The notes under the pieces are model-generated. The model was not told the origin of the DNA. It saw nothing but the letters and a program-made list of their open reading frames with translations, and made no database searches. A stretch of DNA of 64,000 nt, from sequence record NC_041975.1. One strand, 5' to 3'. Position 1 is the stretch's first letter. Each line of letters begins with the position of its first letter. Both the position numbers and the translations under genes were made by a program. This document shows positions 9,111-31,231 of this stretch, piece after piece.

Positions 9111-10244
9111 ATGCAGTACAGTACCTTTAATACCAATAAGAACGATCAGATGGCTGAACCGATGTTCCTGGGTCAGTCGGTTAACGTCTCACGTTATGAT
9201 CAGCAGAAGTACCCCGCGTTTGAAAAGCTGATTGAGAAACAACTTTCATTCTTCTGGCGCCCTGAAGAGGTGGATGTTTCGCAAGACCGTATCGACTTCC
9301 AGGGGTTACCGGATCATGAGAAACACATCTTCGTTTCTAACCTGAAATACCAAACCCTGCTGGACTCGATTCAGGGTCGTAGCCCGAACGTGGCCTTGCT
9401 GCCGATCTGTTCTATCCCGGAACTCGAAACCTGGATTGAAACCTGGGCATTCTCTGAAACGATCCACTCGCGCTCATACACCCACATCATCCGTAATATC
9501 TTTACTGACCCCTCCATCGTGTTTGATGACATCGTGACCAACGAACACATCAAAGCGCGTGCTGAGTCCGTCACGGAGTATTACGACCAGCTGATCGAAA
9601 TGACCATGTACCTCAACTTACTGGGTGAAGGCAGCCATGTAATCAATGGTAAGAAAGTCGTGGTGTCGATGCGGGCGATCAAACGTCTGGTCTACCTGTG
9701 CATCGTGTCAGTCAACGTACTGGAAGCCATCCGCTTCTATGTCTCCTTTGCCTGCTCGTTTGCCTTTGCTGAACGTGAGCTGATGGAAGGTAATGCCAAG
9801 ATCATTAAACTGATCGCCCGTGATGAAGCCCTGCATCTGACCGGCACCCAGCACATGATCATGTTAATGAAGTCCGGTGCTGACGATGCTGAGATGGCGG
9901 AAATCGTTAAAGAGTGTGAAGCAGAAACATACGCACTCTTTAAGGACGCTGCAGAGCAGGAGAAAGACTGGGCGAACTATCTGTTCCAGGATGGGTCGAT
10001 GATCGGTCTGAACAAAGAGATCGTGTGTCAGTACATCGAATACATCACCAACATCCGTATTCGCGCCATCGGTTACGATGACATCTACGCCGGTGTCAAA
10101 GCTAACCCAATCCCGTGGATCAACTCCTGGTTGGTTTCTGACAACGTGCAAGTCGCGCCGCAAGAGTCAGAGATTACCTCGTATTTAGTAGGTCAGATCG
10201 ACTCAACTGTCGATGCAGATGCGTTTGATAACTTCGAACTTTAA
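9111..10244 (+). CDS. nrdB: Ribonucleotide reductase class Ia beta subunit
   Basis: [53 protein letters not shown]; close to enterobacterial NrdB. Confidence 0.97.
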
Positions 10245-11125
10245 TACGTGATCAGCTTCACTCACGTAGAGGGCTGATCGCTAGCCCTTTATGGAGAGTG
10301 TATGTCTGAGATAAAAGATAACCCGGATAACTGGAAAGTGATTCCGGGTTACTCACGTTATGAGATCAACGAAGTCGGCGTTGTAAGAAAGATACATAAC
10401 AAGAAGGTGATGAAACAATGGCTGCGTGGTAATTATACCGCCACTGCTATCACTTCTGATAATAAGTCAACTAGTAGAATAGAATCTATTCATATTTTAC
10501 TGTGCCTTACATTTATTGGTCCAAAGCCCTTACCTGAACCTGGGCACAAACTTGTTACCGCTAACCACAAGGACGGTAACAAACTTAACAATGTGAGGTC
10601 TAATGTAGAATGGTTATCCAATTCTGGTAATATTCTGCATGCTTACAAGAACCGGCTAAATAAATCATCACAGCACCTGCGTCTAACCAATGTGGTCTCT
10701 GGTGAAGTTGTCGACCTGCATTCTTACCGCGAATTATCCAAATGGATGGGTAATCCTAACCTGCGCGGAAGAATGGAGTATCTGAAGTATCGTAACAGGC
10801 TTTATCAAGGCCAGTGGCGAATAGAACTTCTTGGCGAATCAGAGAAGTCTTCAGGGTCTCGTACCAGTAAGCAAGTATGCGTAATGGATGTGGCTAAACG
10901 AATTGGATTGAGGGAGGGTGAGTTTGATACTTTCATCTTTAATTCCATGCATGACGCCGCAGCGGCATTAGGCGTAAGTCGCAAAGGTATTGGTCGATCG
11001 ATTAGTACCAAAGGACGCCATGTTGTAAATGGGTACGCTATATCGCTATCATTTGACGATATGGTTAATGTCACTTATGACAAAGCGTATGTGGAGATTA
11101 GTCTTAAATGGGCGAAACTCAGGGG
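10167..11125 (+). mobile_element. Homing-endonuclease cassette inserted in the nrdB 3' end, carrying a replacement C-terminus
   Basis: Flanked by two versions of the last 25 NrdB codons (10167-10244 and 11126-11203); AT-richer codon usage. Confidence 0.8.
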
Positions 11126-11135
11126 TCAGAAGTAA
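10302..11135 (+). CDS. HNH homing endonuclease (NUMOD4-type N-terminus, HNH core, NUMOD1-like C-terminus)
   Basis: WKVIPGYSRYEIN..G, IHILLCLTFIG, NHKDGNKLNNVRSNVEWLSNSGN, FNSMHDAAAALGVSRKGI. Confidence 0.9.
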   Translation: MSEIKDNPDNWKVIPGYSRYEINEVGVVRKIHNKKVMKQWLRGNYTATAITSDNKSTSRIESIHILLCLTFIGPKPLPEPGHKLVTANHKDGNKLNNVRSNVEWLSNSGNILHAYKNRLNKSSQHLRLTNVVSGEVVDLHSYRELSKWMGNPNLRGRMEYLKYRNRLYQGQWRIELLGESEKSSGSRTSKQVCVMDVAKRIGLREGEFDTFIFNSMHDAAAALGVSRKGIGRSISTKGRHVVNGYAISLSFDDMVNVTYDKAYVEISLKWAKLRGQK

Positions 11136-11203
11136 GTTCTTATCTGGTCGGTCAGATCGACTCGAAAGTGGACGCCAACGATTTCGACGATTTCCAACTG
11201 TAA
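11126..11203 (+). pseudogene. nrdB: Stranded original 3' end of nrdB ([25 protein letters not shown])
   Basis: Direct translation; 25 codons plus TAA paralleling the functional NrdB tail. Confidence 0.9.
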
Positions 11204-19820: not shown

Positions 19821-19852
19821 TAATTAAATACTAGGCGGCGTAATCATATACG

Positions 19853-19905
19853 TAAAGGGGTCTGGTGAAAGCCATATCCCTTTTGGTTATGCTGTCTTTT
19901 TTTTT
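19853..19905 (+). terminator. Hairpin terminator with TTATGCTGTC and long T run
   Basis: AAAGGG...CCCTTT imperfect stem, then GGTTATGCTGTC and poly-T. Confidence 0.65.
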
Positions 19906-19990
19906 TGGTTAAGAAATACTAGCCTTCTCCATTATATGCAATTTACACGATACACTTTTCTATTTATTACATCAGCAAGAGAGATAAGAC

Positions 19991-20134
19991 ATGAGCGCAC
20001 CTGAAGAATTTGATATGGACGGCCTGGAATCACTGGATCTGGAAGGCGCTGAGAAAGCGGCAGAAGAGAAAGCAGCCGGCGGTGGCGAAGCCCTGTCTGA
20101 TGGCGAAGCAGATTGCGAAGGTTGCAAGATCTAA
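19991..20134 (+). CDS. 47-aa acidic peptide ending DCEGCKI, resembling the RNR alpha (NrdA) C-terminal redox tail (not in ORF track)
   Basis: MSAPEEFDMDGLESLDLEGAEKAAEEKAAGGGEALSDGEADCEGCKI*; host-like codon bias; AAGAGAG upstream. Confidence 0.75.
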   Translation: MSAPEEFDMDGLESLDLEGAEKAAEEKAAGGGEALSDGEADCEGCKI

Positions 20135-20523: not shown

Positions 20524-20627
20524 CGTTATCCTATGACTTGTATTTGGCAGGTCTGAGGTGACGTATGTTTAAACGTTTCATGTTCTATCTGTTCAGTAAG
20601 TTATTTGACCATAAAGGGGAGTACACC

Positions 20628-21176
20628 ATGTCCGAAGCAGTGAAAGATCAGCAAAGCAATGATGTTAATGCAACCAACGATGTTGAGGTGCAGCCAACAC
20701 CTGCTGAGACCTCTGCACCGGAACTGGCATCTAACGATGTGGTTGCCGCACCGGAAGCCGCAGGCGATGCCCGTCCTGAAGTCCAGGATACGGTAGAGTC
20801 GACGCCAGTGGTGATTGAACCGGTTGCAGTTGCTGAACCATCCGCACCTGTCGTGGCACCTGCTCCTGTTGCTGTACCTGCGGCTGAGCCAGCTCCCGCA
20901 CCTGCAGCACCGACCACCCCGACCGACAGCGATAAGACTGAAGGCGAACCCGATACCAATCGCTTCGACCATCTGGCCAGTACCCTGAAGAGTTTACTTC
21001 AGGTAGCCGGTCATGAGCTCGACGAAGCATTTGACGATGCAGTACCTTTGGCAAAACAGATCGCTTCCAGTGACGAAGAGTTCGGTGACAAGCTGAAAGA
21101 CATCCTTGTGGTTGTCGGCCGTGAATACGGCGAAGCTTTCCATCATTTCTTCAGCTATGCGAAGAAGCACATCTAA
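20628..21176 (+). CDS. Ala/Pro/Glu-rich protein with duplicated C-terminal helical unit (alternative start 20565)
   Basis: AAGGGGAG RBS before ATG 20628. Confidence 0.7.
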   Translation: MSEAVKDQQSNDVNATNDVEVQPTPAETSAPELASNDVVAAPEAAGDARPEVQDTVESTPVVIEPVAVAEPSAPVVAPAPVAVPAAEPAPAPAAPTTPTDSDKTEGEPDTNRFDHLASTLKSLLQVAGHELDEAFDDAVPLAKQIASSDEEFGDKLKDILVVVGREYGEAFHHFFSYAKKHI

Positions 21177-22304: not shown

Positions 22305-23087
22305 GTGTTTGAAATGCTTTTAGGCGGTAGTCCGAATGGGAACTTGCCATTTGGGCAGTTGTTAGCCAAAACAACAACAGACTTTACAGTCCCTGCTGGA
22401 GTGACCGATATTTCCGGTGTTGCTATCGGTGGTGGGGGCGGGAACTCACGCGGCAATACCATTGGTGGGTCAGGGGGTGATTTGCGCTGGCGGAATCACA
22501 TTGCCGTTATTCCAGGTGAAGTGCTGTCACTTATTACCGGTGTGGTAACAGCGGCTGGGAAACCGGGCACCTCCAGTAAGATCATCCGTAAGTCAACCGG
22601 CGAAGTATTACTGGTCGCTAAAGGCGGTGACTCCACTGATGTATCAACACCGATCAATGGAGCTGATATAGGTGGCGGGAACGGTGGTGCTGGTACCAAT
22701 CCATCAGGTGGTGGTGCTGGCGGGTATACCGGCAATGGTGGTAAAGGTGGTTCAGCTGCCGATGTTGATTCTGGCGGGGGTGGCGGCGGTAGCTCTTATA
22801 CCTTCAGCGGAAACAGTTTTGGTTGTGGCGGTGGCGGTGTCTACCCTAACGGCAAAGGCGCTGATGGCGGCGCACCCCCTGTCAATACCGGCAGTCAGGC
22901 GTTTGGTGGTAAAGGGGGTTCTGGTGGTAATCCTGGTCAAAACACGAATGGGGGCTTATACGGCGGCGGCGCTGGCGCACCCGTTAGGATAACCTTTGCA
23001 ACAACAGGGACTGCCGGCTGCATCAGACTCATCTGGGGCTCGGGTCGTGCTTTCCCAGCTACGAAGACCGCAGATATTACAGCATAA
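22305..23087 (+). CDS. Glycine-rich tail-fibre/virion accessory protein (paralogue of 34581)
   Basis: GAGGA RBS before GTG (MFEMLL); FTVPAGVT.I..VAIGGGG and GGGGG tracts. Confidence 0.75.
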   Translation: MFEMLLGGSPNGNLPFGQLLAKTTTDFTVPAGVTDISGVAIGGGGGNSRGNTIGGSGGDLRWRNHIAVIPGEVLSLITGVVTAAGKPGTSSKIIRKSTGEVLLVAKGGDSTDVSTPINGADIGGGNGGAGTNPSGGGAGGYTGNGGKGGSAADVDSGGGGGGSSYTFSGNSFGCGGGGVYPNGKGADGGAPPVNTGSQAFGGKGGSGGNPGQNTNGGLYGGGAGAPVRITFATTGTAGCIRLIWGSGRAFPATKTADITA

Positions 23088-29590: not shown

Positions 29591-31231
29591 ATGCACATTC
29601 AAGATATGACCTTTCACCTTCGCGTAGACACTCACGTTAACCCCGGGCCAACTTACAATACTCTGCGTCTCGTTAACCAGGATGAAGCTGTGGTGATCGA
29701 GCATCCGATCACCATTGGTGCCCTGAACGACATGAGTAATGGCGGGGATTACGATAGCGACGAGTTTAAGAAAGCAGCAGCAGCTTTTCTGTATACCGCT
29801 TATCTCTACACTCGTGATTACCCAGAAGGTAAAGGCGCGGCAAGTTACGACTTCCATCGCACAGCTGGTATTATTCTGGCGCAATATCTGGATGAAGAGC
29901 ATCTGGGTGAGTTTGAGCCCGATGACTGGAACCGGGAAGAAATCAGGGTGCCTGGAAACCCAGATGGTGTCAGTGCCTTTGTGTTCAGCAACGATGGCTC
30001 CGATATCAACATCCGTATCTATCGCCAAGACCGCGGTCTGGTGAATGAGCGTCTGTTTACCTACAGCGATGAAGAGACGGTTCCTTCTATTGAAGAGATG
30101 CTTGCGCAGTGGGATGCTGATGTCGCTCCTGCTGTAGATCCGGTACAGGAAAACGCAGCCAGCATCTCGTTTGGCGACGTCTCCTTTATTTACACTCTAG
30201 ACATGAGCAAGGAAGGACGCGAACAACGTAAAGCTATCATGCAGGTGGTAATTGGTGATCGCCTGGTCGCTCAGCAGAAAGTCCATGAGAACACCCAACC
30301 GCTCATGTATTACATGATGGAGGTGTTCAACATGCTGGCGCTGCGCATGACTGTGGGTCCGGTAGAAGGCATTAACGCTCAAGACCGCGTGACCTTACTA
30401 ACCGCTATCAGTGGGTTTGTGGGCGGGCATTTAGCGATGCCAGATCAGGTGCAGATCGCAGAGGGTATGCAGTACATGCACGAAGGTGCGATCAGTGACG
30501 AAGTAACCTACATGGTTTCACATCAGCTGATTGCTGACAACCATCTGCGGGCAACCTACCAGTTCAATACCGTGGTCGATGAAACGATGCGTCGTTCAAT
30601 CACCATGTGTGATGAAGTGAGCTACCTGGAAAACCCGATGAGTCCACAGGCGTTCTTCACTGCGTATCAGGCAGACCTCAGCCGTGAGCTGAAACTGTCT
30701 CGGATGTTTGATATCGCAATGATTGCGGCCATTGATCGCGGTCAGGGTCTCGGTAAAGATAACGAACTGTTGTATCGTATCAAAGAAGACATGAAGTACT
30801 TCAAAGAGATGACACTGCATTCACCGGTGATCATGGGACGGAAAACATATGAGTCGTTACCGAACCCGTTGGTAGATCGCCTGAACATTGTTATCACTAC
30901 TGCTCCGACCAACACCTATACCACCCGCTCAGGTGTGGTGTTTGTCAACAGCAAAGAAGAAGCGCTGCTGCACGCGAAGGGTTATCTGGCTGAACACGGT
31001 GGTGACAAGATCTGGATCATCGGGGGTGCGAGTATCTATGCTGCATTCCTGCCAGATGCCAAAGAGATCCACCTGACCACCATCGGCACTGAACGTGAAG
31101 ATGCCGATACGTTCTTCCCGGAAGTTGATCTGCGTCAGTTTAACGCTGCACGTCAGTTTGAGGAAGACCAGGTGTTCGAGCGTGAAGGTGAAACCTTTGG
31201 CTACAACCGTGTCATCCTGACCCGTAAGTAA
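29591..31231 (+). CDS. Dihydrofolate reductase (from about 30704) fused to a ~370-aa unknown N-terminal region
   Basis: MIAAIDRGQGLGKDNELLYRIKEDMKYFK, PVIMGRKTYESLP, RLNIVIT, IWIIGGASIY, DADTFFP. Confidence 0.9.
   Translation: MHIQDMTFHLRVDTHVNPGPTYNTLRLVNQDEAVVIEHPITIGALNDMSNGGDYDSDEFKKAAAAFLYTAYLYTRDYPEGKGAASYDFHRTAGIILAQYLDEEHLGEFEPDDWNREEIRVPGNPDGVSAFVFSNDGSDINIRIYRQDRGLVNERLFTYSDEETVPSIEEMLAQWDADVAPAVDPVQENAASISFGDVSFIYTLDMSKEGREQRKAIMQVVIGDRLVAQQKVHENTQPLMYYMMEVFNMLALRMTVGPVEGINAQDRVTLLTAISGFVGGHLAMPDQVQIAEGMQYMHEGAISDEVTYMVSHQLIADNHLRATYQFNTVVDETMRRSITMCDEVSYLENPMSPQAFFTAYQADLSRELKLSRMFDIAMIAAIDRGQGLGKDNELLYRIKEDMKYFKEMTLHSPVIMGRKTYESLPNPLVDRLNIVITTAPTNTYTTRSGVVFVNSKEEALLHAKGYLAEHGGDKIWIIGGASIYAAFLPDAKEIHLTTIGTEREDADTFFPEVDLRQFNAARQFEEDQVFEREGETFGYNRVILTRK

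Follow-up and report, generated by a model that had tools for sequence, protein, structure and literature searches.

The 64 kb window analyzed here (bases 62001–126000 of Erwinia phage vB_EamM_Special G, KU886222.1) contains a short gene, gp110, whose product ends in an apparent replica of the redox-active arm of NrdA, the alpha subunit of class Ia ribonucleotide reductase. Special G is a jumbo phage of the genus Agricanvirus, with a 273,224-base genome and split multisubunit RNA polymerases; gp110 (window positions 19991–20134, plus strand) encodes 47 residues and a stop, has its own ATG, and is annotated as "hypothetical protein." We found that gp110 is a real phage gene under purifying selection, that to judge by homology it is a phage copy of a small host protein conserved in Erwinia amylovora and many Enterobacterales, and that its tail, as identified by sequence comparison, is a replica of the NrdA redox arm that occurs in two natural versions across the gp110 family. 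We favor, tentatively and with somewhat less than even confidence, the reading that gp110 is a trans-acting arm that would supply host NrdA with electrons drawn from the thioredoxin or glutaredoxin of the host.

Class I alpha subunits reduce their active site by means of a pair of cysteines in a disordered C-terminal tail (PMC9669993). The last seven residues of gp110, together with the stop that follows them, are identical to the C-terminus of the NrdA proteins of T4-like phages that infect Enterobacter, Cronobacter, Klebsiella, and Citrobacter. One of these NrdA proteins (748 residues) was confirmed to have the Pfam ATP-cone, all-alpha, and barrel domains, and upstream of the heptapeptide the proteins carry Gly-Ala-Gly-Glu and an acidic stretch, resembling the Gly-Gly-Gly-Glu and acidic stretch of gp110. 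The tail of E. coli NrdA has the same motif with two additional residues between the cysteines, and this longer-spaced tail was found in 79 of 80 Enterobacterales NrdA proteins, including those of Erwinia and Pantoea. An earlier sequence-only reading of the window had proposed that the peptide mimics the CxxC tail of the reductase alpha subunit, and the identity to T4-like NrdA over the whole heptapeptide and stop carries that proposal far beyond a CxxC.

The tail half of gp110 (residues 31–47; 20081–20131, plus strand) consists of a Gly-rich hinge, an acidic stretch, and the C-terminal heptapeptide with its two cysteines, and it follows a segment (residues 1–30; 19991–20080, plus strand) that contains an acidic N-terminal motif of aromatic, acidic, and hydrophobic residues and a predicted amphipathic helix (residues 17–30). 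As in an NrdA tail, there are two cysteines, at the 2–4-residue spacing of such tails, of which the second is third from the C-terminus, the terminal residues are the same, and the cysteine pair is preceded by an acidic linker that is predicted to be disordered. The prediction rests on composition (15 Asp or Glu and 7 Gly among the 47 residues) and on an AlphaFold2 model of low confidence (predicted local distance difference test [pLDDT] score 64.7 overall), in which the helix at residues 17–30 scores about 70 and the last 17 residues are disordered at 53–57. What gp110 lacks is the reductase itself: at 47 residues it has no Ribonuc_red_lgC barrel and no Pfam match.

We scanned IMG/VR with the back-translated last seven residues and stop and obtained 92 loci. 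About 60 of these were an artefact, in which an antisense frame of a KilA-N/Ant-like prophage gene was multiplied by near-identical prophages, and we discarded them; the example at L013:6895-7416 (minus strand) shows how one chance match can be counted many times over when a redundant prophage collection is scanned for a pattern. Five of the 92 loci were full-length or truncated NrdA genes with nrdB downstream of them. As all of the loci outside the prophage artefact were either NrdA or genuine tail-bearing open reading frames (ORFs), we rejected the idea that the heptapeptide is a chance motif. In an alignment of 25 phage and host members of the family (A5), F7, L17, A20, and the last seven columns are invariant, which leaves no variation in the two cysteines, in their spacing, or in the final two residues; the cysteine spacing is also kept in nearly all of the roughly 150 family members that we collected. 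Because both cysteines and their spacing are invariant, as they are in true NrdA tails, the pair fits a redox-cycling function better than a trap.

Several lines of evidence establish gp110 as a gene. Scored with the window's own codon table, it reaches 0.669 bits per codon compared with 0.341 for the annotated genes of the window, the other five frames at the locus have negative scores, and none of 2000 synonymous recodings scored as high. The pairwise ratio of nonsynonymous to synonymous polymorphism (pN/pS) is 0.24–0.45, and the invariant tail residues of the family are encoded by differing synonymous codons. All Agricanvirus genomes and metagenomic relatives hold gp110, either as the identical 47 residues or as variants that are 83%–98% identical. 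Upstream, an intrinsic-terminator-like hairpin followed by ten U (19836–19906, plus strand) ends the gp109 transcription unit. The fold has an energy of −26.6 kcal/mol (z −4.57; none of 200 shuffles was as good) and is kept in AH06 and two metagenomic relatives; a simple consensus terminator scan missed it, owing to an interior loop. Between the hairpin and the ATG (19907–19990, plus strand) lies a conserved upstream block with a purine-rich ribosome-binding stretch before the ATG, and conserved blocks were found in this interval in four Agricanvirus-like genomes (alignment A1). No sigma-70-type promoter match was found upstream of gp110, as would be expected because Special G encodes its own RNA polymerases. 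A candidate promoter decamer upstream of the gene was rejected, being neither enriched in the window nor conserved.

The codon score, the purifying selection, and the separate, terminator-bounded unit are signs of real and high expression, and gp110 is probably translated. The sequence-only reading had already pointed to the strong codon bias and to the position right after a terminator, and both observations held. It had also presented the peptide as a stand-alone ORF of 47 residues below its ORF-track cutoff; we confirmed the ORF and the 47 residues quoted for it, yet the gene was already annotated as gp110. That gp110 might be a chance ORF or a decaying, nonfunctional remnant of an nrdA 3′ end was considered because it is very short and of low complexity, and because its product is not confirmed in the mass spectrometry table of PMC6690015. 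We judge this extremely unlikely given the pN/pS values and the synonymous changes in the tail codons, a codon score that exceeds that of the window's genes, the conservation, at fixed length, across hundreds of bacterial genomes and five or more genera of phages, and an N-terminal motif that has no counterpart in NrdA.

The sequence-only reading missed that gp110 has a homologue in the chromosomes of its hosts. A metagenome scan returned more than 120 loci, mostly encoding peptides of 43–45 residues on large bacterial contigs; in one of these the gene order is dcm, vsr, yedI (DUF808), the peptide, and a GGDEF cyclase. Exact-sequence look-ups found the protein in Pantoea, many Erwinia species, Winslowiella, Mixta, Serratia, and Rouxiella, always as "hypothetical protein," and a profile search added Erwinia amylovora (323 contigs), Sodalis, Biostraticola, Chania, Pragia, Budvicia, and others. 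Many Erwiniaceae and the Budviciaceae are among the groups covered. The name "conjugal transfer protein TraD" that UniRef gives to some host copies has no profile support, and we judged it spurious. The E. amylovora copy (P0239) is part of the core chromosome, where yedI precedes it by 34 bases and yodC lies on its downstream side. In E. coli both of these genes are present at the locus and no peptide gene is found there. An exhaustive profile search of 1.84 billion representatives yielded just 26 clusters, nearly all of them small.

The bacterial proteins are almost always 43 residues long, and their tail is nearly invariant. Compared over their full length, the phage and host families are related (hhalign 98.1%, E 9e-14; BLASTP 55% identity), and they have conserved F and L columns in common in the N-terminal part. 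gp110 has the features that mark the family as a whole, namely a length of 41–47 residues, an N-terminal aromatic-acidic motif, and the invariant tail. It shares with the 43-residue host protein the same architecture, an identical tail, and full-length homology, and it differs in a four-residue insertion after the first motif, in a Gly-Gly-Gly hinge where the host protein has a Val-Pro segment, and in its location within a nucleotide-metabolism block of the phage rather than downstream of yedI.

On the phage side, gp110 matches the PHROG 10239 profile over positions 1–47 of 47 (E 9.3e-30). This family has no functional annotation. Its profile is also matched by a 41-residue protein of Pantoea phage PSKM and, at their C-terminal ends, by Yoloswag gp34, Wellington gp259, and pEa_SNUABM_5 protein 00034. 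Profile scans gave no Pfam or NCBIfam matches for gp110, and a sequence search of solved structures with the peptide found none. Literature searches aimed at the point found no paper that ties gp110 or PHROG 10239 to NrdA tails or to the host gene, and searches for the heptapeptide and for DUF808/yedI found nothing useful. All of the small tail-bearing IMG/VR matches that could be placed belong to phages of Erwinia or Pantoea. Family members of 41 residues occur in the Dibbivirus phages PSKM, AAM37, and DIBBI (50 kb), and longer ones in Wellington and Kwan (75 residues) and Yoloswag (146 residues); in Rivsvirus pEa_SNUABM_5 the gp110 module makes up the last 45 residues of a 208-residue protein. 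A 269-residue cysteine-rich protein with no Pfam match, encoded at L319:10994-11800 (minus strand) of RCUI01000004.1, also ends in a full gp110-like module.

The second version of the tail was found with a scan for the host type. Alexandra-like Erwinia jumbo phages encode 54-residue members whose last nine residues are those of host NrdA. In pEa_SNUABM_35 (L285:6513-6677), 31 of 33 bases of the tail-coding DNA are identical to the 3′ end of a Pantoea nrdA gene (L104), and the similarity is absent downstream. Recombination with a host nrdA may have been the source of the Alexandra-like tail. A further family of small proteins also has both versions of the tail (L045/L318 and L266/L294).

In three separate jumbo lineages the gene lies 0.5–3 kb from genes for thymidylate synthase, MazG, dCMP deaminase, or thymidine kinase, and the neighbors of gp110 itself are hypothetical phage genes, MazG, and thymidine kinase. 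An all-against-all comparison of the ORFs that surround the gene in 14 lineages revealed no constant partner gene; just nucleotide-metabolism genes recur.

The sequence-only reading had correctly noted that the window contains nrdB and no nrdA, and the statement can be extended to the whole genome. No nrdA is annotated in Special G, and a tblastn search of the entire 273 kb with two phage NrdA queries gave no match below E 0.2. The sole reductase gene that we found is nrdB (gp91; 9111–10244, plus strand), which encodes an intact, host-like class Ia beta subunit (Pfam Ribonuc_red_sm, E 1e-52) with 76% identity to E. coli NrdB and 75%–77% identity to Pantoea and Erwinia NrdB. The nine residues that form the iron site, tyrosyl radical, and radical transfer path are all retained in it, and its C-terminal alpha-binding tail resembles that of the host protein. 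In a sister phage, NrdB has been found as protein in lysates (PMC6690015). As the phage has a lone, intact, host-like NrdB and no NrdA was found, the natural inference is that phage NrdB pairs with host NrdA.

These results leave almost no room for the proposal, also made in the sequence-only reading, that the peptide completes a tail-less phage NrdA in a split reductase. A reductase gene in pieces has a precedent in Aeromonas phage Aeh1 (listed among the references of PMC6690015). Neither tblastn nor the annotation reveals an NrdA in Special G, however, none was found in PSKM, which has a family member and neither NrdA nor NrdB, and every NrdA that we examined has its own tail. We give this explanation practically no credence.

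How might a free tail act? Class Ia reductase makes all DNA precursors, and the step that limits its turnover is re-reduction of the active site by the tethered arm. In the yeast reductase the C-terminal tail of alpha acts between subunits, and a 25-residue peptide from the NrdA tail binds glutaredoxin-1. The mechanism that we favor is that free gp110 would perform the task of the tethered NrdA tail in trans: its cysteine pair would be reduced by host thioredoxin or glutaredoxin, and the arm would then dock at the active site of NrdA and re-reduce the disulfide that forms in each turnover. During infection by Special G, gp110 would add reducing arms to host NrdA while the phage adds a host-compatible NrdB, and together the two proteins would raise the supply of deoxynucleoside triphosphates (dNTPs) for a 273 kb genome that lacks an nrdA of its own. 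We prefer this trans-arm reading because the invariant cysteine pair fits cycling and because the gene neighborhoods in jumbo phages, together with an intact, host-compatible NrdB that stands alone, suggest a role in DNA-precursor supply. The host-type tail of the Alexandra-like members, a second and independent match to NrdA, and the NrdA-like extensions of Acb4-family proteins (see below) also count in its favor. The partner proteins, the redox cycling, and the direction of the effect on the reductase are each presumptive.

A free tail could also be imagined to compete with the tethered one. As a decoy or inhibitor, it would occupy thioredoxin or glutaredoxin, or the site at which the tail docks on NrdA, and so slow re-reduction in the host enzyme, or in that of a rival T4-like phage whose NrdA has the identical tail, much as small disordered inhibitors act on the eukaryotic enzyme. 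The identity to NrdA tails and the small, acidic protein, disordered in the AlphaFold2 model, suit such a role. A decoy could even be selective, as the cysteines are spaced as in T4-like phage NrdA and unlike those of host NrdA; in yeast, Sml1 competes with the C-terminal domain of alpha. A substrate with both cysteines would, however, be reduced and released, which makes it a poor trap, and both cysteines are invariant. Moreover, the gene lies among DNA-precursor genes in a phage that brings its own NrdB, the Alexandra-like phages use the host-type tail, and blocking the sole available alpha subunit would harm the phage. On balance we consider inhibition quite unlikely. The sequence-only reading had suggested both a booster for host NrdA and a decoy for thioredoxin and glutaredoxin, and both are still candidate readings.

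The tail also appears on proteins of another kind, which the sequence-only reading did not anticipate: it is a movable module that is found on other phage proteins, including anti-defense sponges. In the N4-like phage phiEaP8 it extends the C-terminus of a PF13876 protein. Acb4, which inhibits the cyclic oligonucleotide-based antiphage signaling system (CBASS) by acting as a sponge for cyclic nucleotides (bioRxiv 10.1101/2024.12.30.630793), belongs to PF13876, and a profile built from the tail-bearing PF13876 group and its relatives matches the Acb4 structure (PDB 9e4w, E 2.5e-8). Extensions with a cysteine pair are present in 11 of the 120 Acb4 homologues listed (about 9%), and the others end after the domain; the extensions resemble the host NrdA tail over some 20 residues and come in several NrdA-like versions. 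A 159-residue Acb4-like protein (L406) was also seen to carry the tail. A Pfam scan found no Acb4 domain (PF13876) in gp110, which has the tail module alone in common with some members of that family.

The Acb4 fusions bear on a different explanation, in which gp110 is a copy of a host factor that acts in phage-host conflict, unrelated to reductase catalysis, and the NrdA-like tail is just a handle for a shared partner. The phage might sustain or override the level of the host small protein after host shut-off, or gp110 might mimic a labile regulator or inhibit a defense pathway in hosts of the Erwiniaceae/Serratia type. Full-length homology to a host chromosomal protein would be expected of such a factor; all of the identified phages that bear the family infect Erwinia or Pantoea, lineages that have the host gene; PSKM has the peptide and no reductase genes were found in it; the tail recurs on about 9% of the Acb4 homologues listed; and counter-defense proteins are often fused to each other (bioRxiv 10.1101/2025.07.12.664507). 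Set against this, the host gene sits in a housekeeping neighborhood and not in a defense island, and our analysis found no defense system that makes use of thioredoxin or of an NrdA tail, nor is one known to us. That the family switches in parallel between two natural versions of the NrdA tail has its simplest explanation in reductase or thiol-redox partners. We regard a role in conflict as unlikely.

Some of the same observations, and several others, weigh against the trans-arm reading. Host NrdA has its own tethered tail, so what would be gained from free tails is uncertain, and the cysteine spacing of gp110 is of the phage NrdA type, unlike that of the host NrdA it would serve. The host copy of the gene is not near nrd, trx, or grx genes and lies between yedI (DUF808) and yodC. 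PSKM carries a family member although no NrdA or NrdB was found in that phage, and its peptide gene has a helicase/tRNA region on one side and the terminase genes on the other. The fusion of the tail to Acb4 sponges points toward counter-defense. A motif scan of the ORFs, which is a weak test, revealed no thioredoxin-fold gene in Special G; in the same weak scan of all Special G and PSKM ORFs, no CxxC of the thioredoxin or glutaredoxin type was found in an annotated gene of suitable size. Finally, the mass spectrometry table for the sister phages RAY and Deimos-Minion lists NrdB and not the gp110 peptide (PMC6690015).

The layout of gp110, in which an acidic, leader-like N-terminus is joined through a glycine hinge to a C-terminal core containing cysteines, also recalls the precursor of a ribosomally made natural product with a modified core, or a metal-binding peptide in which two molecules would form a four-cysteine site, and one family member is weakly similar to FeoC (E 0.11, below threshold). 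Neither a modifying enzyme nor a transporter adjoins the gene in any of the phage or host contexts that we examined, there are no Pfam or NCBIfam matches, and the identity to two different natural NrdA tails would go unexplained. We consider these possibilities very unlikely. The N-terminal motif was compared with the C-terminal alpha-binding tail of NrdB and with the tip of single-stranded DNA-binding protein, to both of which it has some acidic-aromatic likeness; it is not C-terminal and key positions differ, and mimicry of either was rejected.

Several features of the phage nrdB locus and of the genes near gp110 were noted in passing. A second copy of the NrdB C-terminus, 27 residues with its own stop and 70% identical to the C-terminus of gp91, lies at 11120–11200 (plus strand), in and after the 3′ end of the HNH gene gp92 (10302–11135). 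It looks like the original 3′ end of nrdB, displaced when an HNH homing-endonuclease cassette that carried a replacement end was inserted. Agricanvirus has two nrdB alleles: the Special G type is 97%–100% identical within its group, and the second, found in MadMel, Deimos-Minion, Desertfox, and Rebecca, is just 78% identical to it. A reversed order of nrdB and the HNH gene was noted in the published paper on this phage family (PMC6690015), and together with the two alleles it suggests endonuclease-driven allele replacement. Host-like nrdB genes (72%–75% identical) are also present in many chimallivirus-type jumbo phages (OBP, Kc263, AH04, pEt-SU, PCH45, and N1M2), as well as in 52 kb GJ1-like phages. 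Downstream of gp110, the hypothetical protein gp112 (20565–21176) has a long, acidic, low-complexity center rich in Pro, Ala, and Val, and the hypothetical protein gp114 (22305–23087) is glycine rich and repetitive, with runs of Gly-Gly-x-Gly. The product of gp124 (29591–31231), annotated as dihydrofolate reductase, is 546 residues long, far larger than a plain dihydrofolate reductase, and may be a fusion protein.

More broadly, and with somewhat greater reserve than for gp110 itself, we suggest that free reductase alpha tails may form an unrecognized class of trans-acting small proteins. A core-genome version would be present in many Enterobacterales outside the Enterobacteriaceae and would have been taken up repeatedly by phages, as a separate protein or as an appendage of others such as Acb4 sponges, to tune the relay from thioredoxin and glutaredoxin to the reductase, and with it the supply of dNTPs, during infection. 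To our knowledge, a separately encoded, conserved alpha arm in bacteria and at least five phage genera has not been described to date. If gp110 feeds electrons in trans, it would represent a new way of regulating dNTP supply and would explain how the host enzyme comes to be manipulated by phages that have only the beta subunit or no reductase at all. Should it instead block the relay or serve counter-defense, the family would be a new kind of bacterial small-protein regulator that works by copying a tail. Either way, there is now a testable hypothesis for PHROG 10239 and for the unannotated 43-residue protein of the fire-blight pathogen, Pantoea, and Serratia.

Among known systems, thioredoxin-fold redoxins (thioredoxin, glutaredoxin, NrdH, and T4 NrdC) have a CxxC at the N-terminus of a helix in a fold of about 75–110 residues, which gp110 is without; as a candidate redoxin it has no Pfam or NCBIfam match, and its AlphaFold2 model contains helices only and no fold. 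Yeast Sml1 and fission-yeast Spd1 are small disordered inhibitors that act on reductase alpha at the step of regeneration by the C-terminal arm. Unlike gp110, which copies the tail itself, they lack a cysteine-pair tail, and they are inhibitors; the Pfam scan detected no such family in gp110 and thus no sequence relation. Acb4 (PF13876; PDB 9e4w) resembles gp110 in the cysteine-pair tail of some of its homologues, and its domain is absent from gp110. The closest counterpart is the tail of NrdA in T4-like phages and Enterobacterales, which like gp110 is acidic and disordered, contains glycine, and has its second cysteine at the third position from the C-terminus. gp110 differs from it in not being attached to a reductase barrel and in having its own start codon, an N-terminal motif and helix, and a putative promoter-terminator unit. 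gp110 and PHROG 10239 were already on record without a function, and a separately encoded alpha tail is a variation on the known device of the NrdA arm.

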